The translations under genes were made by a program, and so were the position numbers. DNA of 64,000 nucleotides, from positions 124,001 to 188,000 of the forward strand of contig CDRNVI010000058.1 of NCBI GenBank assembly GCA_977017575.1. Direction: 5' to 3'. Source of the stretch: Paramoeba atlantica. Taxonomy: Eukaryota; Protista; Discosea. Under the pieces are notes generated by a model. It was not told the DNA's origin. It ran no database searches and saw only the letters and a list, made by a program, of their open reading frames with translations. Positions 5,717-64,000 of this stretch are shown in pieces (the first letter of the stretch is position 1; every line of letters begins with the position of its first letter).

Positions 5717-5949
5717 GTGACTTTGTGATGTGTAGATGCGAACGACGTGAAAACGGGAGATTTACTGAAAGGTGATCAGTAGTGCGTGAAATCTCATATC
5801 CACGGGTATAAGAATAGGTAAACTTCTTCTTAGTGGTGTTCCATTGAGATTACAATCATCTTGCACTTCGAAATGTGATGCATACAAATACATGTATCAT
5901 GTAAGACAAAAAATCGCCTACATTTTGTCCCCAACAGAACCTCCCAGGG

Positions 5950-7902
5950 CTACGCCGACGTCAGATGCCCCACGGAATCTACACTGCCCTCTTCCGACCC
6001 CCCAACCCTTTCCTCCGCACCTCGTCCCCTCACCCCTCGACATGCCTCCCCGGTATACATCCCCGCATTCCGGGCTCGAAACACATCCCGGGGACTCACC
6101 TCTACCCCCTCAGGGTAGCTTGCCGCAACCTCCTCCTCCTTCCCCACCCTCTCCCGGTCCCTCTCCCGTACCCTCACCGCTCTCCTCCGGCTCAACTCCA
6201 ACACGTAGCGCTGGGGATCCAGCCGCATCCGGAGATACTCCCCCTCCCCATCTTCCTCCGGACAAAAATCCCCATCCCCATCTCCCCCCGCACTCGCCTG
6301 CTGCCCCTCCAGCACCGACGCCAGCCGTGTCTTTATGTCCCGCACGGAGCTCCCGGTGAGCTCCGCGCACTCCCGCAGCACTCTCCGCTGGTACGCCCCC
6401 AGCCGCCTCCGGTGCCACTGCCGGGTCAGCACCTCCGGGGCCTCCGCCCCCGGCACCCCGTGGAGGAACCCGAAGTGCGCCATCGCCTCCACGGGGTGCA
6501 GCACCCAGAGCTCCGCGCGGAGAGAGCCGCGGAGACGCTGGAGGAACGCAGGGGACTCATTGTAGTTATTAGAATTACAATTTCTATTTCTATTCTTCTT
6601 GTGGTTATTATAGTTTATATTTTCGTGGTTAGTAAAATGAAACGGTTGACTTCCGAGGGGGTGGGATGTCGTGGGCTCGGCATTCTGCATCGGGGCATCG
6701 AAATAGTCCAGCACGACCCAACGACGGTTGTGTTTGATTTCGTACTCGACGGGGTGCGGGCGGGAGGGCTCGAGAAGGGTTCGGAAGTTGGAGGTTAGCA
6801 CGACCGCGAGACCCCCGGGTCGGAGATGGGACCCGGCATGCTCGAAGAAGTGCTCGATCTCCCCATCGATCCCCGCGAGCCCGGGGGCGTAGGGGGTTTC
6901 GTGGGATTCGTACTGGGTTAAGGAGAGTAAATCCGGAGTGTAGACGACACAGTCAAACGGGAGGGCGTAGCTCGCGCGCGGGGATCGGCTGTTGGGGGGC
7001 TTGGTGTTCGAGGGGTCGACCGGGAGCGCGGGGAACATATCTGCGGTTTGAAATTGTAGCCGGCTACGGGTGGAGGTGTCGGAGAGTCGCCGGACATCCC
7101 GGAGCATGCCTTCGAGTGCACGGGGATTGGGGTCCGTACTGAGCAGGTTGATTTTTTTAAACCGGCTGAGGGCGAAAGGGAGGACACCGCAACCTACGTT
7201 GAGACATAGTACCCGCTGCAGCCTTAACGGGTTGTGCATGCAGGTGAACCATTTTATGAATAAAGCCACGTGTTGGAGATGAACGGGTTTCGGTAGCCGT
7301 ACGCCGAAAAGCGGATGGAGTCGAAGGTTGCTTAAAAGAGAGGGGAAATTCACCCCATTGCGCCAGGCCGCGAAGTGATCCACCAGCGAGAGGTAGTCAC
7401 GTACGGAGAGGTGCGTGTGAGCGGCTGCGGGGTAGGCCTTTTCAGCGAATTCGATAAAGTCACGATAGATGCTCTCATTCCAGTGGGTCTCCTCGAAATA
7501 GAACAAATGGCGGTAGAACGTCGTGTTCTTGTCTTTTTCACGAAAATCACGAAGCAGCCAAAAAGAGCGATCAAGGACGAGCCGTTCATAGGTCGCGGTT
7601 GCCGTCGCTTGTTGAAAGACCAGAGACGGGAGATCGATGGCAGGATGCTCCAGCGCAGAGAGCTGCGTTAAATACTTTTGATACTTATCCGCCATTTCTA
7701 ACGAGTGGTTGACTTGAACGTAGTGACCCTGTCGCAGGGAGGCGTAGACGGAGTCGTAGGTGTCAAGATTGGGGTCTAAAAGCCGTACCCCGTGGGTCTC
7801 GGGGTCCAACGTGTCCTGGGGACGAATCACGAGATGACGGGAAGAAAAGACACGGAGGGGGGGAGAGGGGGTGAGAGGGCGGCGAAAGAGCTGCGTCCAC
7901 AT
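5950..7902 (-). CDS. Class I SAM-dependent methyltransferase-like protein, probably mitochondrial
   Basis: 650 aa with LCLNVGCGVLPF (motif I), LLSTDPNPRA, ADMF and FDCVVYTP, plus a presequence-like N-terminus. Confidence 0.75.
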   Translation of the reverse strand: MWTQLFRRPLTPSPPLRVFSSRHLVIRPQDTLDPETHGVRLLDPNLDTYDSVYASLRQGHYVQVNHSLEMADKYQKYLTQLSALEHPAIDLPSLVFQQATATATYERLVLDRSFWLLRDFREKDKNTTFYRHLFYFEETHWNESIYRDFIEFAEKAYPAAAHTHLSVRDYLSLVDHFAAWRNGVNFPSLLSNLRLHPLFGVRLPKPVHLQHVALFIKWFTCMHNPLRLQRVLCLNVGCGVLPFALSRFKKINLLSTDPNPRALEGMLRDVRRLSDTSTRSRLQFQTADMFPALPVDPSNTKPPNSRSPRASYALPFDCVVYTPDLLSLTQYESHETPYAPGLAGIDGEIEHFFEHAGSHLRPGGLAVVLTSNFRTLLEPSRPHPVEYEIKHNRRWVVLDYFDAPMQNAEPTTSHPLGSQPFHFTNHENINYNNHKKNRNRNCNSNNYNESPAFLQRLRGSLRAELWVLHPVEAMAHFGFLHGVPGAEAPEVLTRQWHRRRLGAYQRRVLRECAELTGSSVRDIKTRLASVLEGQQASAGGDGDGDFCPEEDGEGEYLRMRLDPQRYVLELSRRRAVRVRERDRERVGKEEEVAASYPEGVEVSPRDVFRARNAGMYTGEACRGVRGRGAEERVGGSEEGSVDSVGHLTSA

Positions 7903-9281: not shown

Positions 9282-10091
9282 TTACAAGTGCAAGCCACTA
9301 GTCTTTAACCCTTCGGCATAATTTTCTATCCTCTTACTTTGCAGGTAAGGATATGAGACATCCCAATCAAGCGTGACGTGGGCGTTTAGCATAGCATCCA
9401 ATGATACAGATGCAGGTTGATGCAAGAACATCTCCTCGAACACAACTTCTGACTTTTCTCGCTTGAGGATTTCGTAGGATGCCCTAAAAATAACTTGCTG
9501 CACGTAATTCGCCAAGTAATAAAGAAGAGGAAGCGTAACTCGAACAAACTCTTCGATTTTGTGATCCACCTCATGCTTATCCTCTTTCTTTTTTGAAATG
9601 AACTCGAGGTCGTCTAGTCGGTTTCGTATATGGCGTAATACCGGCTCGGGCAATAATTCCGTGATTTGATGTAGCGATCTTCGTAAATTGGGTAACGTTT
9701 GTGTAATAACTTGTTGAACATTTTCTTCAGACAAAGTGAGCCATTTTTGGCCAACTGACAAGGTCGAGGAAGGCAAGGTTTTTGCCTTTTTCGACCCTTT
9801 CGAGGGCCTTTCTCTTTGTTCCAGTTTTTCGCATTCTTGATTCATTCGATCACAGAGGTGCATTACTCCCAATCTTAGTTGGCTAAGGCATAAAATAAGT
9901 TGTACAGGCGGAGGTAGAGTGCACACATCCTCCGTGTTTTTCGAGTTGACCTCATCCGAGGGTGGGGCTATTATGGAGCACAGAATATTATCGTAGACAG
10001 CATTTTGTGATTTCCATGCTTTATGGGCATAGTGCACAATTTGCCAAGACAACAAATCAGAAGACATTGGTAAGAAAGATACGAACTTCAA
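9282..10091 (-). CDS. Hypothetical helical protein
   Basis: 269-aa ORF on the cluster strand that fills the gap between genes; no motif recognised. Confidence 0.6.
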   Translation of the reverse strand: MKFVSFLPMSSDLLSWQIVHYAHKAWKSQNAVYDNILCSIIAPPSDEVNSKNTEDVCTLPPPVQLILCLSQLRLGVMHLCDRMNQECEKLEQRERPSKGSKKAKTLPSSTLSVGQKWLTLSEENVQQVITQTLPNLRRSLHQITELLPEPVLRHIRNRLDDLEFISKKKEDKHEVDHKIEEFVRVTLPLLYYLANYVQQVIFRASYEILKREKSEVVFEEMFLHQPASVSLDAMLNAHVTLDWDVSYPYLQSKRIENYAEGLKTSGLHL

Positions 10092-10309
10092 TTCTGGCCA
10101 AATCTAGTAGTAAAGCCCTGGTTGAAGAATACCAAACGAAATTATATTCCTTTGTGTTTTGTCACTAAAAAGGCAGGTTCTACACATTTCACAAACGTTT
10201 TTACCCCTTCGGATAAAAGATTTTCACAATCATTACAATTATGGTTAAATCACTTGCCTACACTATGATCGGCATACTCCATCATAGTGCATGCCTCCCG
10301 CCTCCGTCC

Positions 10310-12238
10310 TCAGGACTGATTCCCGTGCAGCAGCGCCTTTATCATTTGCTGTCGCAGCACACACTCCGTACCCTGCGAAGTGTTCTCCCCGAGCGGAATC
10401 CGTACCCCGTTATCATCATAGTACGCCCGTAGTACCGCTAAATACATCTCCTTGGCCACTTCCGTGACGGGAAGCACTGAAGGGAGCGCTACCTCCGGAC
10501 CCTTCTTCTTGCCCGCCCCCCTCTGCTGGGACTCCACTAAAATATGAACCCCACTCACGGAGGTACGGAACAGGTACCGCACCAACTCGACCCGCCGCTT
10601 TTGATTCCACGCCGCAAGCTGAGCGTGTGGTTCAATCGCAAACGACAGCGCGGAGTTTATTTTATTCGAAGCAAATTCGACATTTCCCGGAGGTCCGAGA
10701 AATTCGAGTCGTGCTAACGAGGCAAGAATACTGATGCTATTTCCCAAGGTCGTTTCATGGACCATATTCGGGAGCAGGACAATGATCTCCTGCATCAACG
10801 GGCGAAGTTCAAAAATGGCCGGACACAGCGTCGGGGGACGGCTGGCATCACTGACAAGCGTTGAAAGCCCACTCAGGAGTAAGGCTAGATCCGAGGGCTT
10901 GGCCTCCGGAAGCAACCCCTTAACGTGCCGGAGAAGTGAAACAAACTCCTCAGGGGGGTACACTTTTAAATGCACCATGGCGTTCAGCAACCGGCAGGTA
11001 TCGCTGATCGTCGTGGCATCGTGATGCGAGGGGAGGGTGAGGGAATCCGAAATCGGACCCTCGGAGGCCGCGTAGCCCGGAAACCGAACCCGTAAAAACT
11101 GAGCCGCAAACAACCGCACGTAGGTTTGGTTATAAAAATGCGTATTCCGCAGCGCCTGCAGCGCATCCACCAGTATCCGCGGGGAGGTATCCGCGAGTTG
11201 TGCCCCCAGCGCACGGCAACAGGCGTTGTACATCCCTTTATGGTCAATCTTATAATACGCCCCCGCGCGCAGCACATACAACACCTCCAACTGGGAATAC
11301 CCCTCCCCTCTCCTCATCACGTCCTCCAGCAACCTCTGCACCTCCCCCGCCATCCCATGCAGCACCTCCCCCGCCTTCCCATACTGCACCGCCTCCACAC
11401 TGTGCCACAGCCGGGCGTAGTCCGTAAACGTGGCCATCCCGCGGGTCGCGGCAAACCCCCCCAGCAGCGCGGCCCACATCCCGGGGTGCGCCACCCGGAC
11501 CCGGGCGAACGCCAGCCCCACCGTCGCCACCTCCCCCGGGGCCATCTCCCCCGCGAGCTGCGCGACCCGCGGGGCCAACCGCTGCATGGTGTCCGTGAAG
11601 TTCCCCGGGAGCAGCGCGGCCAGGGCGGCCACCACCGGGAGCACCCCCTCCACGGGGAGCTCATACCCGCGGTCCGCCAGCAGCGTGAACAGCGACTCCA
11701 CGAGCTGGGGGACGGCCTCCCCGAGGTGGAAGTAGCTGATGCAGGAGGCGAGTCGCGCGGCCTGGGCCACCGAGAGGGCCCGGGACCGGGCGTGCGACGG
11801 GAGGTTCTTGAGGAGACGGTCCAGCGCGAGACGGGCTTGGCTGAGGAGAGTGGGGTCGTGGGGGGGAGGAGTCGTAGTCGTAGTGGTAGTCGTAGGAGTA
11901 GGAGTCGTAGAGTTGTGGTGATGGGGAAGCGTAGTAGGTGTCGTAGTAGGTGTCGTAGTAGGATTTGTAGAGTTGTGGTGATGGGGCGTCGTACGAAGGC
12001 TACGCTCGTGTTGCTGTTTCAGTAGGGTGAGTCGAGTTACGGTGGTGGCTGCGATGGTTTCGTAAAAGGATTGGGTCTCGGCGAGGGGGGAGGGGGAGGG
12101 GGGGGTGTCGTCGAGGGTGGGGGGAGGGGGGGGAGGGGAGCGTCGGGAGGGGGAGGAGGAGGGGAGGGTGGAGGGGTTGGCGTGGATTTTGGCACGCATG
12201 CGAATCCATTGCTGCCATTGTTGTTTGATGGGGTTCAT
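10310..12238 (-). CDS. Helical-repeat (FASTK/RAP-like) protein with a Pro/Thr-rich N-terminal insert, probably organellar RNA-binding
   Basis: 642-aa ORF with repeated amphipathic helices (EVATVGLAFARVRV, EVLYVLRAGAYY, DLALLLSGLSTL). Confidence 0.65.
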   Translation of the reverse strand: MNPIKQQWQQWIRMRAKIHANPSTLPSSSPSRRSPPPPPPTLDDTPPSPSPLAETQSFYETIAATTVTRLTLLKQQHERSLRTTPHHHNSTNPTTTPTTTPTTLPHHHNSTTPTPTTTTTTTTPPPHDPTLLSQARLALDRLLKNLPSHARSRALSVAQAARLASCISYFHLGEAVPQLVESLFTLLADRGYELPVEGVLPVVAALAALLPGNFTDTMQRLAPRVAQLAGEMAPGEVATVGLAFARVRVAHPGMWAALLGGFAATRGMATFTDYARLWHSVEAVQYGKAGEVLHGMAGEVQRLLEDVMRRGEGYSQLEVLYVLRAGAYYKIDHKGMYNACCRALGAQLADTSPRILVDALQALRNTHFYNQTYVRLFAAQFLRVRFPGYAASEGPISDSLTLPSHHDATTISDTCRLLNAMVHLKVYPPEEFVSLLRHVKGLLPEAKPSDLALLLSGLSTLVSDASRPPTLCPAIFELRPLMQEIIVLLPNMVHETTLGNSISILASLARLEFLGPPGNVEFASNKINSALSFAIEPHAQLAAWNQKRRVELVRYLFRTSVSGVHILVESQQRGAGKKKGPEVALPSVLPVTEVAKEMYLAVLRAYYDDNGVRIPLGENTSQGTECVLRQQMIKALLHGNQS

Positions 12239-47587: not shown

Positions 47588-49011
47588 GGCGGATTGTCAA
47601 CACCAACGCACCACTTTTTTTCCCAAAAAATAATTTTCTTGTCATTTCCAGTGCACCACTTTTTCTTAAAAACTGTATTCTCATTTCCAATGCACCATCA
47701 ATTATTTAAAGAAGAATTATTTTATAATATCCTTCGGATCTACACTACAAATGCGCCGTTATTCAAGACTCAGTCATTACGATCGTAATCGTATTCAATC
47801 ACTCTTTACATCTGGCGAGAGTCGGCGAAGCATAGCTCGCATAATTGGCAAAAGTCACAGCACTGTTTGTCGCGAGTTGGCGCGTAATGCAAGAAGGGGT
47901 CAGCGCTATGAGGGGACGAGGGCACAGCGCATTTCGAAAAGACGCCTCTCGTGTAAAAAGGTCAAGCCTCACAAGATACAAGGCCTTTTGGAAGAGGAAG
48001 TCAGCTCTCGACTTCAAAAGAAGCACAGCCCGGAACAGATTGCAAATACGATCCGTAGCTGTCGTACCGCCTCGACTTCTACCATATATCGCCATATTCG
48101 TCGCAACGCGTCCTTAGGCGGCAAGTTGTACACCCATTTGCGGATCCGGCGAAAGAGGCCATACCGTCGTCGCACCAGACCTGATCGCAGCGCGATTCCC
48201 AACCGAACGCCACTTGAAAATCGACCAGAAATTGTTAATAAGCGTCGGCGCTACGGCGATTGGGAAGCAGACTTGGTCGAGGGTCGAGGACATACCGGAT
48301 ATATTCTTACCCTGTGCGAGCGTAAGAGTCGCTTCCTTGTTCTTCGCAAGTTGGAATCTAAGCACGCGAAGGGGGTAAGCAAACAAATTGTAGACGGGTT
48401 AAAGAATTACAAGGTTCAAACAATCACATACGACAACGGAACAGAATTCTGGCACCATGAAGAAGTAAACAAAAAATTAAAATGCAAGTCTTTCTTTTGC
48501 GCTCCATATCATTCGTGGGAGAAAGGGTCTGTGGAACATGCAAACGGTTTGATCCGACAATTCCATCAGAAAACCGAATCTTTTGAGAATTTGAACCAAA
48601 GTGAATTAAACAAAACAGCATTGGAATTGAACACTCGTCCTCGGAAATTATTAAATTATCGTTCTCCAATGGATTTTGTGAATGAACTGCGTAAGTAAAA
48701 GAAGCTAAGTAAGCAAAGGTACGTGAGAAAGCTTGTAAAGTTAGTCTGTTAGTGTTGGAAATTTAATGACATTAAATTTAAGCATTTTGTAAAGGTGAAG
48801 AAATTCTTGTCTAATAAAGTTTCTTACTCAGATCTTACACTTGTATTACACTTTCTTTAAATACTCTGGATAAGTTTTTATGTTGAAAGGAAAAAGGAAC
48901 GATGTTCAACTATGGTGAGGCGCAGAAAAAAGGAATGACGGTCGACTATGGTGAAAAAAGTGGTGCGCTGGAGTTGACAATGGGGTGGTGCACTGGAGTT
49001 GAACATCCGGG
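47588..49011 (+). mobile_element. Complete 1424-bp IS30-family element with imperfect 25-27-bp IRs and a 3-bp GAT TSD
   Basis: GAT|ggcggattgtcaacaccaacgcacc...ggtgcactggagttgaacatccggg|GAT (IRs 18/25 identical). Removing the element and one GAT restores a continuous reading frame. Confidence 0.92.
47751..48698 (+). CDS. Intact IS30-family DDE transposase (315 aa)
   Basis: HTH GKSHSTVCRELARN, HSPEQIA, STIYRHI, GDWEADLV, TITYDNGTEF, APYHSWEKGSVEHANGLIRQF and LNTRPRKLLNY; DD33E spacing. Confidence 0.97.
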   Translation: MRRYSRLSHYDRNRIQSLFTSGESRRSIARIIGKSHSTVCRELARNARRGQRYEGTRAQRISKRRLSCKKVKPHKIQGLLEEEVSSRLQKKHSPEQIANTIRSCRTASTSTIYRHIRRNASLGGKLYTHLRIRRKRPYRRRTRPDRSAIPNRTPLENRPEIVNKRRRYGDWEADLVEGRGHTGYILTLCERKSRFLVLRKLESKHAKGVSKQIVDGLKNYKVQTITYDNGTEFWHHEEVNKKLKCKSFFCAPYHSWEKGSVEHANGLIRQFHQKTESFENLNQSELNKTALELNTRPRKLLNYRSPMDFVNELRK

Positions 49012-51544: not shown

Positions 51545-51850
51545 GGGTCATTTTTTTTATCAGGGCCCACGGCTCATAGAAGAGGGAGCCGGGAACTGGC
51601 ACGCGGACTTCGAAATGATACGTACAGTGCCAGGCGCGCTGAACGAGCAGCGAAGAAGTCCATGCTGAAACGCCAGCCGCGCCCATGCATGATTAAAGGA
51701 GAGATTAAAGACAAAGTCGTGTCTCTCCTACGCAGGTGCTTTAGCCCCCAGCAAATTACAGTAGTTTTGCGCAAAGAAGATGGTATTAAAGTATCCCGAA
51801 CGTCAATATACGGGTTTATTAAGCGGGATGATGGTCAACATGGGAACTTG
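51545..51850 (+). mobile_element. IS30-family transposase fragment
   Basis: SRELARGLRNDTYSARRA...IKGEIKDKVVSLLRRCFSPQQITVVLRKEDGIKVSRTSIYGFIKRD parallels the 59634 copy. Confidence 0.85.
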
Positions 51851-52666
51851 GAGAGTTTGAAAACAATTTTCCTAGCTCATCTTTTCTCTCCCGGAAACGG
51901 GCGTATTTTTACTATGTTAATGCCCGTTTCCGGATGGCGCTAGGAGAGGAACTGTCCCTCTTGTCGCAAAGTAGGGGTGCGCCTCCCTTCCCTCATCTCC
52001 CACCACCCCGCTCGGAACACGGTTCCGAGTCCCCATGCGCTGCAGGACCCTTCTACCATACCTTTTGTGGGTCCGTGGGTCCGGACCCACGACCAGGGTC
52101 CGGACCCACGTAACAGCCGTAATACACTCAATATTACACTTAATATTGTATACACTCAAATCTTAATGCCGGTTATTTATAAAACTTTATCAAAAACTTT
52201 TGGGATATATGCTAATTCGCCAGCGATGTTGGTTTTGGAATCATACATGTACCATATGTACTGTATTCTTTAATTCTTTTATTACTTGAAGCTTTGAAAC
52301 CTATTTCTTAGCCAAATCTTATTTGATGGAACATTCTTCGCTTCGTCCGACGAACATTGACTCAAGTCAAGACCTACCGCCGGATCCACGTCGGAGACGA
52401 TTGTCCGGGCGAAAATTCATGACGGAAGATGCCTTCCCACAATACCTCTCTCTCGTGCGATGTGCATCAGATTGTATGTACTCTCACGAAGGCATACCGT
52501 TAAATACCAACGGCTTTGAGCAGCACTACGAGTGCAATCATTGCAAATGGTCCTCGCACGGCAAGTATAAAAATCATTGTCTGGAGCATCGTCGTGCTTG
52601 TCTGGATAAAATTTCTTCGGAGCGAACTTCGGATCTCTGCGACCATGTGTGGATTGTCATACTCAG

Positions 52667-53059
52667 AGGGTTGAAACCTTCCCAGGCGCTCCCAGTGAAA
52701 ACCTATGGAGTCTGCACTTGGAGATTTTGAAAGGGTGGGTGAGATTTCAGCTCAAGGTCGTAAATTTGGGAAAGTAGTAAATGAGGTCGTTGCTCCACTG
52801 GGCAGGATACATGTCCTGTAAGGTCAACGACCCATTATCTCGGCGCATGAAACGCTCCAATGCTTGCCCCTTTAGGCAAAATTTAGTATACCGTACCCAC
52901 TTAGTATACCTACTAGGTATCCTGGAACATGGTATATTTTGCTTTTAAGTGACGAATGTAAGTTATAAGACGTGAGTAGGGAGAATAACATCTGCAAAAA
53001 GTATATGCATTTTAGAGAAAAAAGTACGCTCCCAGGCGCTCCCATCCAGTTTTAACCCT
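52667..53059. mobile_element. About 393-bp non-autonomous element with 11-13-bp TIRs inserted into the IS30 terminal IR
   Basis: CTCAG|agggttgaaac...gttttaaccct|CTCAG. The reconstructed empty site catactcagtgcaac recurs intact at 53116-53130. Internal direct repeat cccaggcgctccc. Confidence 0.75.
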
Positions 53060-53375
53060 CTCAGTGCAACAAAAACGAGAAAAATATGGGTGTGTTCCGG
53101 ATGTCAGGATTTTCGCATACTCAGTGCAACGCTGTTTTTTCGGTCGGACAGCACCACGAACGGACGCGGGATTGTATGAGACATGTTAAGAAAGAAACAA
53201 TCGATTAAGATAAAAATGGATTAAGATAAAAAATTATATAAGGAGAAGAAAAAAGGAGTACCTGGATAATCGATATTGACGGAACAACATAACGCGTTTC
53301 TTTAGTAAAGAGATGAACTTTTCGCCTTTACTGCTTTACAACTTACGGCTATACAACTTACTGCTTTCATGTATA

Positions 53376-56320
53376 CCGTATACCCCCCCCCCCCGTAATA
53401 GAATGGGTTTTGGGCCAAAATGGCCAAATCTCTGTTACTGGGGGGTGTATGCTTTTTTGGGGGAGTAACTTCAGGACACTGGTCCGGACATGGAATTTTG
53501 TCACCATGGTACTCCCCCTCTCATTAATAATTATAATTATAATCTATAAACCTTTTTAGTTTATAATTATAATTATAGTTTATAATTATTAATGAGATTC
53601 GATAAGTGATTTTTTCTTACTATGGACTTCAATTTCTTGATTTTCGAGACACTACGTTCAACTTGGAAGCAATTTTTAGTGCAAAGTATGTGGTACAGGT
53701 GTCTTTGTAGATAAAAAATGATGAATTTGAGGTTTATAATTATAAAAGTGAGACTCAGAATTATAATCTCATTAAATTTCTATAAACGATCCCTTTAATG
53801 ATTTTTGGAGGTTTATAATTATTAATGAGAGGGGGAGTACTATTTTTTCGAAGAAAAAAAAATTCTTTTTCACTCAGTTGTATTCCTTATTAATGATTTT
53901 CTACTATCAATAGTAAAAAATTTTCTTGTCAAATTTTCCTGAGTTGCATGGTGCAAACTATTTGCTCCTGCTGGAAGGGTAGACCCCCAGCCCCTTCGCC
54001 TCTTCTCCATCCCGTCTACTTCTCTCCCTCCCCTTCTTTGCCTTCGCCTTCCGTCTCTTCTTCTCTATCTCCATCCTCTTGTCCCGTCTCCTCCTCTCTC
54101 TCCCCTTCTTCACCTTCGCCTTCCGTCTTTCCTCCTTTATGTTCTTTGCCTTCGCCTTCCGTCTCTCCCTCTCTTTCCCCCCTTGTCCCAGACTCCTCTT
54201 CTCTCTCCCCTTCTGCACCCCCTGTCCCAGACCCCTCTTCTCTCTCCCCTTCCTCTCCCCTCCCGTCTCACGCTCCACGCCATACGTTGGATGCGTACTG
54301 GGCTAAGAGATCACGGAGTATGGAGAGGGAGGTGATCCCAAGGGCTAGTGGGCCCGTAAGTAGTTCAGTATTGGGTTTTGGAGCGAAAGTATTGTGTGTT
54401 CAAGAGGGGATTGTTAGGAGAGGGGGGCATGTTGAAGAACATATAAAACGCAGGATGTATTTTCATACCAGTTTATCAGTCAAATATTCCTGGTTTTGAT
54501 TTCCCTTGTTTATCTACCTCTGTAGAAGAGAAAATGAAAAAAAGACAGGAAGATGAAGAAAGCGTTATTGTGGACATAGAGGCAACAACACAAGTTGCTT
54601 CTTCTGAATCAATAATCGCGAGGAAACAATATACTTATAATGAAAAATTAGATAAAGTGAGACGATACATGGCAGCCCCCTGGGGGCAAAGAGATAAGCT
54701 TGTGAAGGCAAGTGGGGTAAAGTACGGAACAACGGCAAGTTGGATGGCAAATTATGAAGATATAAAGAAGGCTGTACAACGAGGATTTGGCACCCTTACA
54801 AAGTTAATGCCACTCGTAAAATACAAGGAGCTTTTTGAACAAGCCTACAAATACTATTGTACCGCACGTGAAATGTTTTCTGCAGTTCCTATGTATCACA
54901 TACGATTGTACTGCATGCAAAACAGCGAAGAATTTTCAAAATTAAAAGTAAAAGATCAGTATTTTAGGATCGGGGAATTTGAAATGCATTACGGGTTATC
55001 TGCTAGGCGTCGTACAGGCTTAACCCAACTTTTACCTTCTAATTTTCAAGAGAGACATGAGGCTCATTTTCGAGTTGTAGAAAATTCTTTAAAAGACGAG
55101 TGTTTCCCTGAATTTATTATTCTTTTGGATGAGACGGGTGTTTTATGGAACCCTGCTCCTACAACAACTTTAGCTCCAAAGGGTTCGAAATGTGTTCCTA
55201 TTAGAATAAAATACGAGAAAAAACAGTCAACTTGTCTTTTGTGGGTTTCAGAATGTATTAAAAGAAATGAAAAAGGTTACGAAATATTCAATGCAAAATA
55301 TGAGAATCCTTATATTATTTTTGAAGGAAAAAAGGAGTGCCAAAGATCTAATTCAGTGGAGAGTAAGGTAAGGAAGGCTGTTGAACAGAAGCCTACGTAC
55401 GCAGAGGTTAATCAAACGGGGTTTAAAATTCGTTGAAAAAATTCCCAATTGTTATAACAAGAGGGCGTGGCTTATTATGGACAGATTTTCAGCCCACCGC
55501 ACAGAAACAGTTGAAAACGCAATAAGTAATAAGGGATATAAAATTTTTTATATTCCTCCTGGTTGTACTTCTATTCTGCAATTTCAGGATGTTTATGTGA
55601 ACAAACCATTCAAAGATCGTATTAGAAACTTTTACACCAAGCATTGTATTGAGAAAAATAATAATGTAACGAGAGAGCTTGTTGTTCAATGGGTAGTGGA
55701 CGCCCAAGCATCATTAAAATTACAAATGATAGAAAGTGGAATAAAAAAGCTTGTATTAAGAAATTTTGTAGGAGTTGGAGAAGAAACAAATGTCAACCAA
55801 GGGACAGACGCGGATCTTCCGACGGAAGTGCAAGTGGCGCTTTTAGAAGATGAGCCGCAGGATCTGTCCTTGGTTGCCGTTGCAATATCTTTTGCCGAGG
55901 CAGTCCAGCCTGAAGAACATGGCTATGAAAATATAGAAAGTGATTAGCTTGCATAACATTATCGACTTCTATTTTAACTGTCATGACAGTTTTTTAGATG
56001 TCGTATCAACAAACTTCAAGTAACTTTAGTAACTTAGCTTTAGTCTCTCTTTCATCTTCTTTTAGTCTAAGATCTCTTCTAATCATGAGTAAATGCTTTC
56101 GTTTGAGCCACCACCACCCAACCCGTCCAGCGACCCATGACGCCCAGCCTCCCCTGTCACCCCCCCCCCCAACCCCTCACCAAACCACCCCCGACGCCAG
56201 CCTCCCCGGACCGCCCAACCTCTCACCCAGCCATCCCCGACGCCAACCCCCCCAGCCACCCAGCCTTCCGAGCCGAACCTCTGTTACTGGGGGGGGGGGT
56301 GTCTTACTGGGGGTATACGG
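53376..56320 (+). mobile_element. pogo-family (DD35D) transposon with TA TSD; transposase 54534-55947 has one frameshift near 55430
   Basis: TA|ccgtatacccc...gggggtatacgg|TA; RKQYTYNEKL, LLDETG, LIMDRFSAH and IPPGCTSILQFQDVYVNKPFK (35 residues between D and D). Confidence 0.9.
53512..53837. mobile_element. 326-bp Stowaway-like MITE with 25-bp TIRs and TA TSD, nested in the pogo element
   Basis: TA|ctccccctctcattaataattataa...ttataattattaatgagagggggag|TA; same terminus as the element at 45809. Confidence 0.92.
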
Positions 56321-56891
56321 TAGTACCGTCTCTTCATAGTAAAATTTGGCCTTCCAAGCTCTTTGAGGAGACCCATTTCAAGCCTGCCCCGAACATAAGG
56401 CCGCCTTCCGCGGATCCGTAGGCACTTGTGAAACTTCCCCCCATTGTCTTTGTCTCGACAAACAAATCGATAGATTGTGGAAGTGGATGGTGAACCTTGT
56501 GAGCCAACAAGTGTATATCCTATTAGCAACCTGCTCCGGGCTGTGAAGCTTTCGGAGACAGGTCTTTACACTTTTTTCAAGACTGGCTCTAATTTGACGT
56601 GGTCTGGTCCCTTTATTGACCAGTCGTCTCTTGGCAACACGATGGGCACGGCTAGAACGGTATTGCCCACCTCTTTTCCTGTTGCGTGCCAGCTCACGAC
56701 ATACCGTACTTGGGGACTATTATGTAGAAATTAACCTTTTGTTGCGCTGAGTATGACAATTTGTTGCACTGACATTGACAATCCACCATGCACCGTACAT
56801 GGATAAAGTTAAGCCTTTTAATACAAAGGTTTTACCATGCTTATACGCGATGACAAACCTCCTGGAAGTAGATACATATGGTTTTTAAATA

Positions 56892-58463
56892 CAGGGGTGA
56901 AAACTTCCATCTGGGGGGGGGTCTAAAATTTGTAAAATTTGCTCAATTTTGTAAAATAATAGCGCATTGGAGAGCTCTCGCAGAGTTGTATGTCTTTGGC
57001 GTATTCGGAACGCTCGACTTGAAAGATTTAATCTGATGACAAAAAAATAATTTTTTTTCTTGTGAAAATATGGCAATTTTTTGTTTTTCCCCATTTTATG
57101 CCTCAAAAGCGAGTTCGCTCAAGGACTTCCCGTGGTGTTTTGAGCGCACGCTCCTATGCCTCACCAGGGAAGATTAAGGAAAGTCACAGGATGCTTCTTG
57201 TGGCGGACTTTGAGAAAACAGAGTCTTATTCCCGGACTGCCCAAAATTTTGGTGTCCACGAGGGAACTGTGAAACTCTGGGTGGAAAGATTTAATTGCAC
57301 TGGCGACGTGGCCAGTCCATCCCCTACGCGTCAACCTAGGGTCACCACCTCTGATCTTATGAAAGTATCTTTAAAGCTTATTGATGACGCTTATCGTGAC
57401 CTTCCTTATGGTATCTCCACTTGGAGCGAGCTCTGGAGAGAGGTAAAGCGACGTGGCTTCACATGTTCAATAACATCCCTAAGGAACATGTTGAAAAACT
57501 CAAAAGAAAAAATTGTGCTCAGAACAGCTTTAAAGACCCTTTTCTTATCTAATAATCATAAGGAGCGCAGAGTGCAATTTGCCACTGAAGTGCTACAGTG
57601 GAGCGACGCTGCGCTGGAAAATATTATTTTCTGCGACGAAAAAAAATTTACGTGCAAAAGATCCACCCGACCCACGTACCTTTGCCGAAAATCTGACCCC
57701 CCCAAAGAACAAACAGGGGAATTAGAACCCTAGCATGGTGGAGAAGGTATTATGGTTTGGATGGGGGTGAGCTTAAAGCATGGGTTTCATTTACACGTAT
57801 TTCCTACCCATGATTCTCAAGGAAACAAAGTAACTGTAAAGGGACAAAATTTTTATGAAGCCATGAAAAAAAAGGGGGGTCTGTTCCAATATTTAAGGAG
57901 ACATCGGGCCACAATAGTGATGGACAATTGCCCGGCACATAATAAGGCTCGTGCCGCGGCCCAAGAAAAGGGTTATTCTTGGCTCCGATGGCCAGCACGA
58001 TCCCCTGATCTAAACCCCATAGAAAATCTTTGGTCAATAATGGACGGGACAAAGGACCGAATTCAACCCAAAAATCAACAACAATTACTCTCCGCAATTC
58101 ATGATTCCTATGATAAACTTAAGACAGAACAAATATCCAAATTTGAGAATACGCTAAAAAGCTTCAGAAAGCGTTGTAGAATCATTGTAGAAAAGAACGG
58201 TGCACATTGCGGATACTAACAGGGGTTACTAACAATCTTTTTGGGGGGAAAAACGTTATTTTTTAACTTTTTTGTATCATTTTTCAAGTGACAATTCGAG
58301 TTTTTGACCTATTCGGCATTTGTAGTTCCACTTTGATATGTTAAAAGCTACCAGTACGAAGACATACAACTCTGCGAGAGCTCTCGAATGCGCTATTATT
58401 TTACAAAATTGAAAAGTTTTTACAAATTTTAGACCCCCCCCCAGATGGAAGTTTTCACCCCTG
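56892..58463 (+). mobile_element. 1572-bp Tc1/IS630-like transposon with about 100-bp TIRs and TA TSD; transposase 57062-58219 has one in-frame TAG at 57731
   Basis: TA|caggggtgaaaacttccatctggggg...cccccagatggaagttttcacccctg|TA; IFCDEKKF, IVMDNCPAH and WPARSPDLNPIENLW (DD32E). Confidence 0.93.
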
Positions 58464-59209
58464 TATGTATGAAAGTCTGCGACTTCCCGTCTCATCAGAA
58501 ATGCTTTTGCAGGCACGTCCCAAAGTTCTCCACGAAATGCACGCACTTACCGCTAGACTGGCGGACGAATTATGGAAAATTTTGTGCTCCGACATTGACA
58601 CGTATTCCTATGTTGGATTGGCCGTAGACACGGGTATTGACCGTGTAAAAGCTGAGCACATAATGATCGTAGTGCTTTACGTGGAACGTCACGAGTATAT
58701 TCTCCCTCCTATCTATTCCACCAGACACAAGGCGTATGATGGCTATGCCATGGCCAAAGAGCTTATGGACTGTTTGTCAAGTAACTTGGGGGAAGAACGA
58801 CTTCTCAAGCTCGAATTTTTAATGGTGGAAGGTTCTACGGTAAATCACGTTGCCCGTGTTCATTGTGAGGGATTCCTAAAGACAATCTACGATCGCATAT
58901 CTCTTGTTGGTGACAATGATCTGGAAAACATAGAACTTGGTGTCAATCGGTTGTGTCGGGTCTCACTTTTGTCTTGCGTAGGTCATACAGTGGTTTCAGT
59001 TGATCTTGCCCCCCCTCGGAATTTTGATTTTGATTTATCCGTTTTTGCTCATCTTTGCAGCATTGGAGAGATCTCGTTCCCCTAGCGAAGAGCTTTGCCG
59101 CCTTTTTTTCATAGAGACCCCCTGGTGCCCCCTGGGTGACCCGAAAGTTGACCAAAATGAAACCCAGCCCAGCGACCCCCACCCGCTCAAACACCCCCTC
59201 CCCCCTTCA

Positions 59210-59307
59210 CCCACCCTCCCGAACCAAATCTCTGTTACTGGGGGTCAGCCCAAAAATGGTCAAATCTCTGTTACTGGGGGGGGGTCTATTACTGGGGGGG
59301 TATACGG
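59210..59307 (+). mobile_element. Solo right end of a pogo element related to 53376-56320
   Basis: aatctctgttactggggg motifs and the ctattactgggggggtatacgg|TA terminus. Confidence 0.75.
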
Positions 59308-59345
59308 TAGTACCGTCTCTTCATAGTAAAATTTACATACCAAGC

Positions 59346-59595
59346 GGCACATTGACAATACATAAGGCACATTGATAATGCATAAGGTGTATTGATAATG
59401 CATAAGGCACATTGATATTGCATAAGGCACATTGATATTGCAAGAAATTGGGCACTTTTGTATTGCATAGTAAGCGGCACATTGATAATGCATAAGGCAT
59501 ATTGATAATGCATAAGGCATATTGATAATGCATAAGGCATATTGATAAGGCATAAGGCATATTGATATTGCATGAGGCACATTGATAATGCATAA
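59346..59595. repeat. 21-bp tandem array, about 12 units (gcayattgataatgcataagg)
   Basis: Directly visible; a short interruption lies near 59445-59470. Confidence 0.95.
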
Positions 59596-59633
59596 TCGAT
59601 TTTTTTCTAATTTCCACTTTTTTTTGTCGGGCA

Positions 59634-60326
59634 ATGTCGAACTTCAATAAAGTGAAAACGCGTCTTGATTCGGATGATCGAGCGATGATAGAACTGTTGC
59701 ATAACCAACAAGAGTTTTCTCAAGAGGAGATAGCGGAGAAGGTAAAAGCCTCTCAATCTACAATCAGCCGGGAGTTTGCCCGGGGCACCTTCAAAGACGT
59801 TTATCACGCGAAGCGCGCCCATCTTGCGTGCAGTAAAGCGATGTCAAAGCGCAAGGGAAAGGCTTACAAAATCGAAGGTGACGTGGAGGAAAAGGTGATC
59901 CGTCTATTGGAACGACGATTTAGCTCGCCGCAGATCAGCGTGGTCTTACGTAAAGAAGATGACGTTAAGGTGTCGCGTGTCGCAGTGTACGGTTTTATCA
60001 GGCGTGATGAATCCCTCGGGGGAACACTGTATAAGTGCCTGCGTCGAGGCGGTGGTCGAGGCCGTCGCCTGCGCGGCAAAAGCCGTTTTAAGATCCCGAA
60101 TCGCACAGACATTAGCGAAAGGCCCAATGTTATCAACACGCGGGGAAGATTTGGTGACTGGGAGTGCGGCCTAATAGAGGGGTCAACGCACAGTGGGTTC
60201 TTCCTAAGTTTGCTGGAACGGAAAAGCAGGTTTGGTACACTAAAGCTACTGCGCACGAAGAAGAATGAGGTCGTTGCAGAGGCTATTGGTAGCGCCCTGG
60301 AACACTATCTTGTTCATACGATTACG
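59634..60326 (+). mobile_element. Divergent IS30-family transposase, truncated after HTIT (before the second Asp)
   Basis: SQSTISREFARG, FSSPQIS, VYGFIRRD, IPNRTDISERP, RFGDWECGLIEG and LLERKSRF. Confidence 0.92.
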
Positions 60327-62123: not shown

Positions 62124-62146
62124 GATACAGTTTCTGTACTTTGTTG
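62124..62146 (+). other. Spliced-leader exon 3'-half-like sequence GATACAGTTTCTGTACTTTGTTG
   Basis: 21/23 match to the 3' part of the T. cruzi SL exon as recalled (GATACAGTTTCTGTACTATATTG). It is not followed by a GT donor. Confidence 0.75.
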
Positions 62147-64000
62147 ATTTCTTTTTTTAATCTAGTCTTCTCTTGGGGCTCAGTTCTCCTATGACACAGG
62201 TGAAAAATCCTCAGACCCACGTAGGTACGAACGAAGACTCTCATTCATTCCATCAGAATATTGACGTCAGCGAAGGTACTCTCAGTGAAAGCGCTCTCAT
62301 CGACGAAGAGCGTTCCCACTGTCCCGGCAGTTGGGACCAATTCGATGGCAACAAGCACCTGATCTCCACTGCGAGCACTTACGACGAACAATTTTACACT
62401 ACCCCGATCCCGAAGAATATTCCCAAGGAATGGATGGAGCGCGTACGCCACATCACACAGGAGAGGGAAACTCCGGACACAGGACACGCAGAGGCCGAAG
62501 ATGAGGAAACACAACACTGTGCGGTGAGAAGGCAGAAAATAACGCAAGAAGACGCACTCGCACCCAAGGCCGCCGATAAAAGCTATACTCAAAGCCGCAG
62601 TGAAAGACGCTCTTTCCCGCCAACTGCAAAACACTTCACCATCGAAAGGGGTCACCAAAACGGACTCGCGTCCGTCAAGACGAACACCTTGGACATACCA
62701 TTCTTCACCCCGGCACGCTGTAAACAAGACCACCTCCGCGGAAAAAACACAAAGTGGAGAAGAGTATCGGGAATGCCCAGCGGTGGGATGCTCTTGGCGA
62801 AGTCCGCCGCACGGAGGGTCGTGACAAGCATTCTACAATCACGTCGCATACGACACACCCGAGCGACGAAAGCCATCCCCCAGGGACCCAAACGCATCAC
62901 TCCGAACTTCCCTCACTGACCACGTGCAAGGACGTGCCCCCTCGCTGCCGCCAACTCTGGGGAGAAATCCTTACAAACGCAGCTAAAAACGCAGTCACCG
63001 AGAACTCTACAGCCGCATGGACCCTACTCGCTATGCTTCCGAAGTGCTTACTACCAGCCCCACACCGAGGAGGTCGCAAGAACCACACAACTTACTCATC
63101 ATACGTCCAGAAGTGCATGAACCGATGGCTTGCACAAGACTAAATGTCTCCCTATGGAGACTTTATGTCTCCCTATGGAACGAAGCAGTAGACAACACAC
63201 AGAAGAAACAATCCGCTGCTTCTACAGCCGTCCACGACGAGGAGGAAAAAGCCGCTATTCGAGCAGAGTTGCTAGTTCGACGAGGTGAGTACTCTAGGGG
63301 TATGGCTGCACTTACCGCGGATTCTATGGCGCCCGACGACGAAGACACCTTCCGTAAGCTTCAAAGCAAACACCCTTGCCGTCATCCAGACAGTGACATC
63401 ATCGACTATGCGCCTCCGTCCACAGAGCCTTTAGTAGTGCAGGAACCCGCGGTAGAAAAAACGATCAAAAGCTTTCACAGGGGTTCCTCGGCAGGAACAA
63501 TGGGTTTGCGACCCGAGCACTCACAAGCTGCACTTCTGGCGCGCGTAGACAACACGGTGAAACCTCTTAACGCGCTTACACATCTTGTGAACCACCTGTT
63601 AGCCGGGAAAGCACCCCTAGAGGTACAGCCATACTTCGTGGGAGCCAGACTTTGCGCCTTGGAAAAGGGTGAAAACGATGTCCGACCTATAGCAGCGGGA
63701 GAAACAATACGTCGATTGGTGAGCAAAGCGGCGTGCAATGCAGTGAAGAGCAAAGCTAGCGAAATATTCAAGGGGTTACAGTTCGGAGTTGCGACGCCGG
63801 CAGGAGCTGAACGAATAATTCACACTTGCCGGCATGCCATGGCAATCCACACAGACAACCCCGACCTGGTACTGTGCAAAGTCGACCTGAGCAACGCCTT
63901 CAACAACGTAAGCAGATCAACTTTCTTGAAACTCGTAAGCGATCACTTCCCGGAATTGCTTCCATGGGCAATCTGGTGCTATACGACAACCAGTGTTTTG
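62147..64000 (+). mobile_element. CRE-clade non-LTR retrotransposon 5' part (frameshifted; runs off the window end)
   Basis: Zinc-finger-like CPAVGC...FYNHV; AWTLLAMLPKCLL; RGSSAGTMGLRPEH; ARLCALEKGENDVRPIAAGETIRRLVSK; LQFGVATPAGAERI; KVDLSNAFN. Confidence 0.92.

Follow-up and report, generated by a model that had tools for sequence, protein, structure and literature searches.

An IS30 family element that was very probably inserted into a hAT transposase gene within the nuclear genome of a protist

Can an insertion sequence (IS) of the IS30 family, which to our knowledge has been described only from bacteria and archaea, transpose inside a eukaryotic nucleus? This question is raised by a stretch of 64,000 nucleotides from Paramoeba atlantica (GenBank assembly GCA_977017575.1, contig CDRNVI010000058.1, positions 124,001 to 188,000 of the forward strand), which we call the window and whose coordinates are used below. 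It contains a 4140-bp element at 52648-56787, here termed IS30B like the lineage it represents, whose plus strand begins with TGTGGATTGTCATACTCAG and finishes with CTGACATTGACAATCCACC. According to our analysis, a member of the IS30B lineage, resident in the nuclear genome of the protist, was very probably inserted into the coding region of a hAT transposon. That the lineage moved inside the nucleus follows from a sister copy of the hAT element which keeps the target site untouched. A first-pass annotation of the window had already proposed nuclear transposition, and this proposal is supported by the eukaryotic target and the eukaryotic pogo-like invader, by the empty site and by the eukaryotic contigs on which the copies are found.

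The ends of the element, its target-site duplication and the reading frame of the host gene all point to a precise insertion. In unedited form, the element ends constitute an 18-nt inverted repeat with 83% complementarity (repeat search, window). When a 393-bp insert close to the left end is taken out, the ends TGTGGATTGTCATACTCAGTGCAACAA and GGTGGATTGTCAATGTCAGTGCAACAA agree in 23 of 27 positions, which is the figure given for the inward-facing repeats in the first-pass annotation. The exact 11-mer GTGGATTGTCA occurs in the 64-kb window at the two element ends only, and the 25-mer of the right end has one occurrence there versus 0 expected. The element is flanked by ATG on both sides, at 52645-52647 (ATG on the plus strand, CAT in the IS30 sense) and at 56788-56790, as had been noticed before, and a 3-bp target duplication is typical of IS30 transposases. 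The sister copy has a single ATG at the corresponding site. Once the element and one ATG are removed, the frame of the host gene rejoins from ...SDLCDH to APYMDKVKPF...LLEVDTYGF, so that the in-frame continuation of the interrupted open reading frame (ORF) also holds true.

The sister copy came to light when the interrupted host ORF was used as the query of a word search, which returned the protein P0179 (85% identical, 194 residues) with the unbroken sequence ...SDLCDHAQYMDKVTHFNTNVLPCLYAMTNLPGSRYIWFLNMYESL..., spanning the insertion site as SDLCDHAQYMDKV. P0179 is encoded at locus L003 on the contig ctg4017l (282 kb), which holds a paralogous copy of the host hAT element; L003 and the further comparison loci L004 to L006 are situated on other contigs of the ENA assembly ERZ24900291, from one organism and one study. 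Three pieces of the window are contiguous in L003, where the IS30 element and a Tc1-like element present in the window are both absent: 52121-52647 matches L003 9798-10322 with 91% identity, 56785-56891 matches L003 10317-10424 with 95% identity and 58464-58969 matches L003 10423-10928 with 92% identity. The empty site in L003 reads GATCTCTGCGACCATGCACAGTACATGG (GCGACCATGCACAGTAC), uninterrupted and with its single ATG. The first-pass annotation had suggested a search for uninterrupted hAT copies and had predicted the empty site tgcgaccATGcaccgtac; L003 carries exactly this sequence apart from one substitution (cacAgtac). Since the flanks of the L003 copy, which include the eukaryotic genes SAC3_GANP, NPL4, TMEM208 and MAM33, are unrelated to those of the window, the L003 copy represents a paralogue rather than the second allele.

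The same empty configuration is present in Logan contigs of sequencing runs of the organism, four of which (X1-X4) were aligned to 52200-57100. In each of X1, X2 and X3, a contig skips 52642-56784, which amounts to 4143 bp (4140 + 3), and the letters ACCATG fit either side of the join. The empty-site contig of X3 continues past 56891 without the Tc1-like element. The filled configuration is represented as well, in that contigs with 0 differences cover the left junction and filled-junction contigs occur in three runs.

One could also imagine that 52648-56787 is original hAT sequence and was deleted in L003, and the fact that only two hAT copies were compared at the nucleotide level leaves some room for this idea. 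However, the segment has the inverted ends of the IS30 lineage and a 3-bp duplication, an IS30B unit with identical termini is present at three unrelated loci, and the full-length hAT relatives P0137 and P0130 cross the site without the segment, so that the probability of a deletion in L003 is practically negligible.

The assignment of the host as a eukaryotic hAT-type transposase gene is supported by sequence comparison with its relatives, for which a library of 1.84 billion proteins was searched. The left end of the host element together with the N-terminal part of its transposase ORF occupies 52058-52647 on the plus strand, where P0137 and P0130 also align. The terminal region from 52058 consists of GC-rich GGGTCCG repeats, the homology between the window and L003 begins at CATACCTTTT in both copies, and the ORF part at 52323-52647 encodes zinc-finger-like CxxC/HxxH motifs. 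Beyond the IS30B element, the ORF continues on the plus strand at 56788-56891 (APYMDKVKPFNTKVLPCLYAMTNL...), colinear with P0137, P0130 and P0121 and with a frameshift after ...TNL that P0179 of L003 does not have. The RNase-H-like core (AVDTGIDR...) follows at 58466-59001 on the plus strand, and the copy is truncated further on. The 206-residue ORF of this region (58465-59082) has 57 relatives (best E-value 5.8e-45). With both insertions removed, P0137 and P0130 are colinear from the zinc-finger-like part across the IS30 site to the core, in an alignment that contains one frameshift after ...TNL and also crosses the site of the Tc1-like element (IWFLN/MYESL).

A Pfam search with the host ORF gave no match, and hAT membership is therefore deduced via the relatives. 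The hAT dimerisation domain PF05699 (cut-off 21.4 bits) is present in the full-length relatives P0128 (24.9 bits) and P0162 (24.5 bits), with a weak match in P0164. The L003 copy is an internally deleted hAT element that retains the region of the dimerisation domain and aligns to the PF05699 part of P0128, while the window copy is truncated before the C-terminus and its right end is missing. Look-alikes of the host core retrieved with a language model, which we take as a lead only, are DUF4371/FAM200-ZBED5 proteins and all eukaryotic. The hAT element of L003 has a 9-nt perfect inverted end, CATACCTTT, which is followed by the GC-rich GGGTCCG repeat. The element is flanked by ATAAAATC and TAAAGTCA, which agree only if one of them is shifted by 1 nt. 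The hAT ends in both copies (52058-52125 in the window; 9686-9760 and 13743-13816 in L003) contain runs of GGGTCC(G) that form long imperfect palindromes. Directly upstream of the left hAT end of the window, at 51572-51850, there is a short IS30 fragment that resembles the copy IS30C described below (profile positions 31-91, E-value 8e-5).

The IS30B element was itself a target for other transposons, and the first-pass annotation had attributed its later invasion to eukaryotic elements that target TA. This is valid for the main invader, a nested DNA transposon of 2945 bp on the plus strand at 53376-56320, with TA at 53374-53375 and 56321-56322, perfect terminal inverted repeats (TIRs) of 14 nt (CCGTATACCCCC.../...GGGGGTATACGG) and two frameshifted transposase ORFs (54534-55436 and 55381-55947). 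It is not valid for the 393-bp foreign insert at 52667-53059, which has short inverted ends (AGGGTTGAAAC / GTTTTAACCCT) and is flanked by CTCAG. The classification of the main invader as a eukaryotic TA-targeting element of the pogo/Tc5-like type is supported by a match of its predicted transposase to DDE_1 (E-value 5.8e-11, 42.7 bits; cut-off 22 bits) and by Tc5/CENP-B look-alikes of its N-terminal ORF at 0.94, with 182 shared features and all from Eukaryota. Contigs from X1, X2 and X4 skip 2947 bp at this site, with the 2 letters TA shared, and the IS30B copies in L004 and L006 are intact at the same position, GAGAC(G/C)GTACTATAC(T/A)TGAAAGCAG, with a single TA.

Inside the pogo-like element, a miniature inverted-repeat transposable element (MITE) of 338 bp is situated at 53506-53843; its TIRs of 31 nt are 97% complementary, TA is present on both sides and its sequencing depth is that of a high multi-copy sequence. 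The order of insertion is hence hAT, then IS30B, then the pogo-like element and then the MITE. The 393-bp insert replaces 20 bp between two terminal motifs. Neither L004 nor L006 has it, further copies in the runs contain 20 other letters at this place, and according to its depth it is partly multi-copy. The Tc1/mariner-type element, which was inserted into the same hAT ORF outside of IS30B, occupies 56892-58463 on the plus strand, has TIRs beginning with CAGGGGTGAAAACTTCC... and is flanked by TA at 56890-56891 and 58464-58465. It encodes HTH_Tnp_Tc3_2 and DDE_3. L003 lacks it, and the two sides overlap by 2 bp where they meet.

A quite different explanation would be an artefact, namely that bacterial IS30 reads were misjoined to protist DNA in a chimeric or contaminated assembly. 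Bacteria may be present in the protist culture or sample, and a single study produced both the runs and the assembly. Nevertheless, the exact junction with its 3-bp duplication, the empty site in a paralogue, the filled-junction contigs in three runs and the invasion by eukaryotic transposons all speak against such an artefact, as do four copies with 92-99% identity in different eukaryotic contexts and a best bacterial identity of only 42-47%. We consider it exceedingly unlikely, and a nuclear insertion of IS30B stays the preferred explanation.

The remaining IS30B sequence of the window lies on the minus strand and is best understood by comparison with the near-intact copy in L004, to which it is 96.3% identical over 767 aligned bp. 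Its 3' terminus at 52648-52666 comprises the outer half of the terminal 20-bp motif; the sense strand finishes with ...CTGAGTATGACAATCCACA, is 100% identical to L004 7289-7307 in this part, and L004 and L006 end alike. The 3' non-coding region at 53060-53375 is 92-99% identical to L004 6958-7268 and to L006, with its innermost 20-bp motif at 53111-53130 according to a motif scan. The last approximately 22 codons of the transposase (…LKWVSPKELGRPNFTMKRRY..) are found at 56321-56389 and align to L004 6840-6961, the C-terminal end after RPRKC. An N-terminal remnant of the transposase, about residues 35-140, occupies 56390-56718 and includes the second helix-turn-helix (HTH), SPEQV, STIYRF and LRIRGRRPY. 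The 5' end at 56719-56787 consists of the terminal inverted repeat GGTGGATTGTCAATGTCAGTGCAAC and a second 20-bp motif.

The N-terminal remnant carries small frame-shifting indels and stop codons. It is 93.6% identical at the DNA level to L004 6101-6424, and in tblastn searches it shares 54% identity with the 315-residue transposase of the element IS30A (47751-48695) and 61% with P0004. In a search with the IS30 profile of NCBIfam, NF033563 (cut-off 80 bits), the remnant (minus strand, 56716-56390) matched profile positions 1-64 (E-value 3e-7) and 68-105 (E-value 0.019). A global DNA alignment between IS30B and IS30A gives 58% identity in the N-terminal coding part and is uninformative elsewhere. 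Pfam gave no usable IS30 match with the pieces of the window copy, so that the assignment needed NCBIfam and the sister copies.

Compared to L004, the window copy lacks 32 bp with one end motif, 139 bp with the start codon and the first HTH, and approximately 470 bp with the DDE domain. The last of these deletions fused the C-terminal tail at 56321-56389 straight to residue ~140, and L004 6425-6839 has no counterpart in the window copy. Likewise, no DDE domain was detected in the window copy with Pfam, the NCBIfam profile or tblastn. We also considered a reading of 56320-56389 as transposase residues 140-168, with the left arm as a decayed DDE region, and rejected it, since the alignment to L004 identifies this piece as the C-terminal end. 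The window copy is a dead deletion derivative without catalytic domain. As no transposase can be encoded by it at present, it either decayed after landing or was moved in trans.

For the second of these possibilities, the copy would already have been a deletion derivative of about 0.8 kb at the time of insertion and would have been mobilised by an autonomous relative, instead of decaying in place. The preservation of the ends and the 20-bp motifs with loss of coding parts fits this scenario, as do the existence of near-intact members of the lineage and a sequencing depth over both arms that is several times that of single-copy DNA. On the other hand, no second copy with the same deletion junctions was found (L004 and L006 have their full length, and the truncation of L005 is a different one), and the full-length copies explain the depth signal. 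A mobilisation in trans is thus possible but rather doubtful.

The three sister copies of IS30B in L004, L005 and L006 were identified by a word search with the 112-residue remnant of the window. They are located near eukaryotic genes or retroelements: an ABC transporter and an AAA/Vps4 gene are neighbours in L006, DFRP_C and retroelement ORFs in L004 and retroelement ORFs in L005. In L006 there is also a called gene with DDE_Tnp_IS1595 (a Merlin/IS1595-type transposase) at 10122-10976, near the IS30B copy. The L004 copy (5861-7311) is a near-intact element of 1451 bp, the ORF of which has one frameshift and one stop and matches NF033563 in two pieces, at positions 1-89 (46.3 bits) and 91-237 (163.8 bits). 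Its translation contains GDWEAD, TYDNG and AVENMNG and thereby the catalytic residues D, D and E, with 33 residues between the D of YDNG and the E of VEN. The copy in L006 (5816-7425) is decayed and contains small internal tandem duplications and inserts, and in the L005 copy (5860-6300) unrelated sequence cuts in after residue ~105.

Every copy starts with GGTGGATTGTCAATGTCAGTGCAAC and finishes with ...GACAATCCACA, and the full-length copies have three inward-facing 20-bp motifs (ATTGTCATACTCAGYGCAAC) at each end. As flanking triplets, the window copy has CAT/CAT, the L004 copy TCA/TCA and the L006 copy CAG/CTG. Precise common termini, unrelated flanks and differing 3-bp duplications (CAT, TCA) argue against a spread of the copies by segmental duplication or gene conversion. 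A local duplication is hinted at by a 39-bp stretch at 59296-59334 of the window, which is 100% identical to 56309-56347 and comprises a pogo-like end, TA and 26 nt of IS30B C-terminal coding sequence. It includes a base specific to the IS30B copy of the window, and the upstream pogo-like sequence (59100-59306) is only about 70-85% alike. The stretch may be a second junction between IS30B and a pogo-like element or a local duplication; no other hAT or IS30B copy was found within the window. Taken together, a spread without transposition is very unlikely, and transposition of IS30B is the explanation that we follow further.

The affiliation of the element with the IS30 family is supported by the profile matches of L004 and by the termini and 3-bp duplications that the copies share, from which it was deduced. 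The sequence data comprise a profile match, the DDE spacing (L004), inverted repeats and a duplication of 2-3 bp, all in agreement with the family, while the prokaryotic host with which IS30 has been described is replaced by flanks of eukaryotic genes and transposons, a difference that does not detract from the homology. The ends of IS30A and of IS30D, a copy in locus L001, are variants of the same sequence, GGYGGATTRTCA..., and a verrucomicrobial relative has GGGTGGATTCAGGG within its left inverted repeat. A quick maximum-likelihood tree groups IS30A and its 98% identical twin with IS30B (window and L004) and IS30D in a single clade, which has a support of 96 in the Shimodaira-Hasegawa-like approximate likelihood ratio test (SH-aLRT), is separated by a branch of 0.7 from 40 metagenomic IS30 proteins and lies apart from the bacterial IS30s as well. 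The nearest bacterial relatives, in a comparison with one genome per species, are metagenome-assembled genomes of Verrucomicrobiota with 42-47% identity, some with several copies per chromosome.

Further IS30 material in the window belongs to other copies. IS30A at 47588-49010 is intact, with an ORF of 315 residues that scores 245 bits against the IS30 profile and with repeated end motifs (TTGTCA...GCACCAC); its twin is located on another contig (L002). IS30C at 59335-60326 reaches 122.9 bits against the NCBIfam IS30 profile and is truncated at residue ~230. About 12 tandem units of 20 bp, GCATAAGGCACATTGATAAT (59340-59600), stand in front of its 5' end, and in the tree IS30C is a long branch for which a placement is not possible.

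The insertion was thus exact and produced a 3-bp duplication, and copies at loci without any relation to each other have kept their termini. More generally, it is quite likely that IS30 founded a true nuclear DNA-transposon lineage in the protist, which entered probably from prey-type bacteria such as Verrucomicrobiota, diversified, gained its triple-repeat ends and kept transposing.

Several points weigh against these conclusions. A single organism, study and assembly supplied all of the DNA evidence; X1-X4 are possibly the data from which the assembly was made and would then provide consistency and not independent proof, and the junctions are supported by Logan contigs and not by raw long reads spanning the 4.1 kb. 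Because its catalytic domain is missing, the window copy cannot be shown to have been competent itself when it was inserted, and none of the four IS30B-lineage copies that were read has an intact ORF. In addition, the duplication in L006 matches in 2 of 3 positions only, a clean 8-bp hAT duplication was not found in L003, the bacterial outgroup of the tree was drawn from matches of IS30A only, and a search for RNA evidence for the organism found none.

Mechanistically, an IS30-type DDE transposase produced by the protist would have catalysed the insertion within the nucleus. The enzyme could have been provided by the window copy before its decay or by an autonomous relative, for which the near-intact L004 copy is an example. 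It presumably binds the 20-bp motifs, three of which are present at each end in full-length copies, via its HTH domains, and the chemistry might be the cut- or copy-and-paste reaction known for bacterial IS30. A bacterial ORF without promoter might be expressed thanks to polycistronic transcription and trans-splicing of a spliced leader. The genomic setting of the window is eukaryotic, since its first 41 kb contain eukaryotic genes that are all on one strand, among them those for a protein kinase, a topoisomerase I C-terminal domain, a choline-transporter-like protein and a Na/H exchanger. The sequence ACAGTTTCTGTACTTTGTTG at 62128-62147, which we take to be a spliced-leader-like relic, precedes an ORF with a weak LsmAD match. 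Judging by this relic and by the gene clusters on one strand, the DNA may be of a euglenozoan-like organism.

A nuclear-transposing IS30 lineage would extend the list of IS families that have eukaryotic counterparts, in a field where published cases of transposon transfer from bacteria to eukaryotes are very rare. It would also be a natural test case for what a bacterial transposase needs to work on chromatin, and polycistronic, trans-spliced transcription may lower the barrier in this host group. The locus offers the cleanest type of evidence, since the vacant site is preserved in a paralogue, the element is flanked by a target duplication, and eukaryotic transposons are found as its target as well as among its invaders. 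A literature search on IS30 in eukaryotes or Euglenozoa gave bacterial papers only and no description of a eukaryotic IS30 lineage.

In comparison with known systems, IS30B resembles bacterial IS30 elements (E. coli IS30, NF033563) in its single transposase with N-terminal HTHs and a DDE domain with a D-E spacing of 33 residues, in its terminal inverted repeats of about 25 bp, its 3-bp duplication and its length of about 1.4 kb, and the terminal GGTGGATT is common to IS30B and the verrucomicrobial relative. It differs from them in being located in eukaryotic nuclear chromosomes, where it very probably transposed and is nested among hAT, pogo and Tc1 elements, in having three 20-bp motifs at each end and not one inverted repeat, and in its identity of 42-47% to the nearest bacterial copies. 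DDE lineages that span prokaryotes and eukaryotes are otherwise represented by Tc1/mariner-IS630, Mutator-IS256, Merlin-IS1595, PIF/Harbinger-IS5 and ISL2EU-IS4. The IS families with eukaryotic cousins are given as IS630, IS256, IS1595, IS5 and IS4, without IS30 (Gilbert and Cordaux 2013, PMC3673617). In contrast to these ancient superfamilies, which are widespread in eukaryotes, the IS30 lineage has so far been seen in one organism. As far as it is summarised in PMC3673617, a single-copy silent IS5-like element in the rotifer Adineta vaga (Gladyshev and Arkhipova 2009) is likewise a bacterial-type DDE insertion sequence in a nuclear genome, here that of an animal, whereas the IS30 lineage is multi-copy, split into sub-lineages and has demonstrably moved. 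When 430 eukaryote genomes were surveyed for all IS families, IS607 was the only one found, and IS30 was not (PMC3673617); the IS607-like sequences reach up to 22 copies per genome, and contamination was excluded by their eukaryotic flanks. This case is similar to ours in that a prokaryotic IS family was integrated into a eukaryotic genome. IS607, however, uses a serine recombinase and IS30 a DDE enzyme, and for IS30B the insertion is documented by an empty site, a target duplication and a nested layering of transposons.

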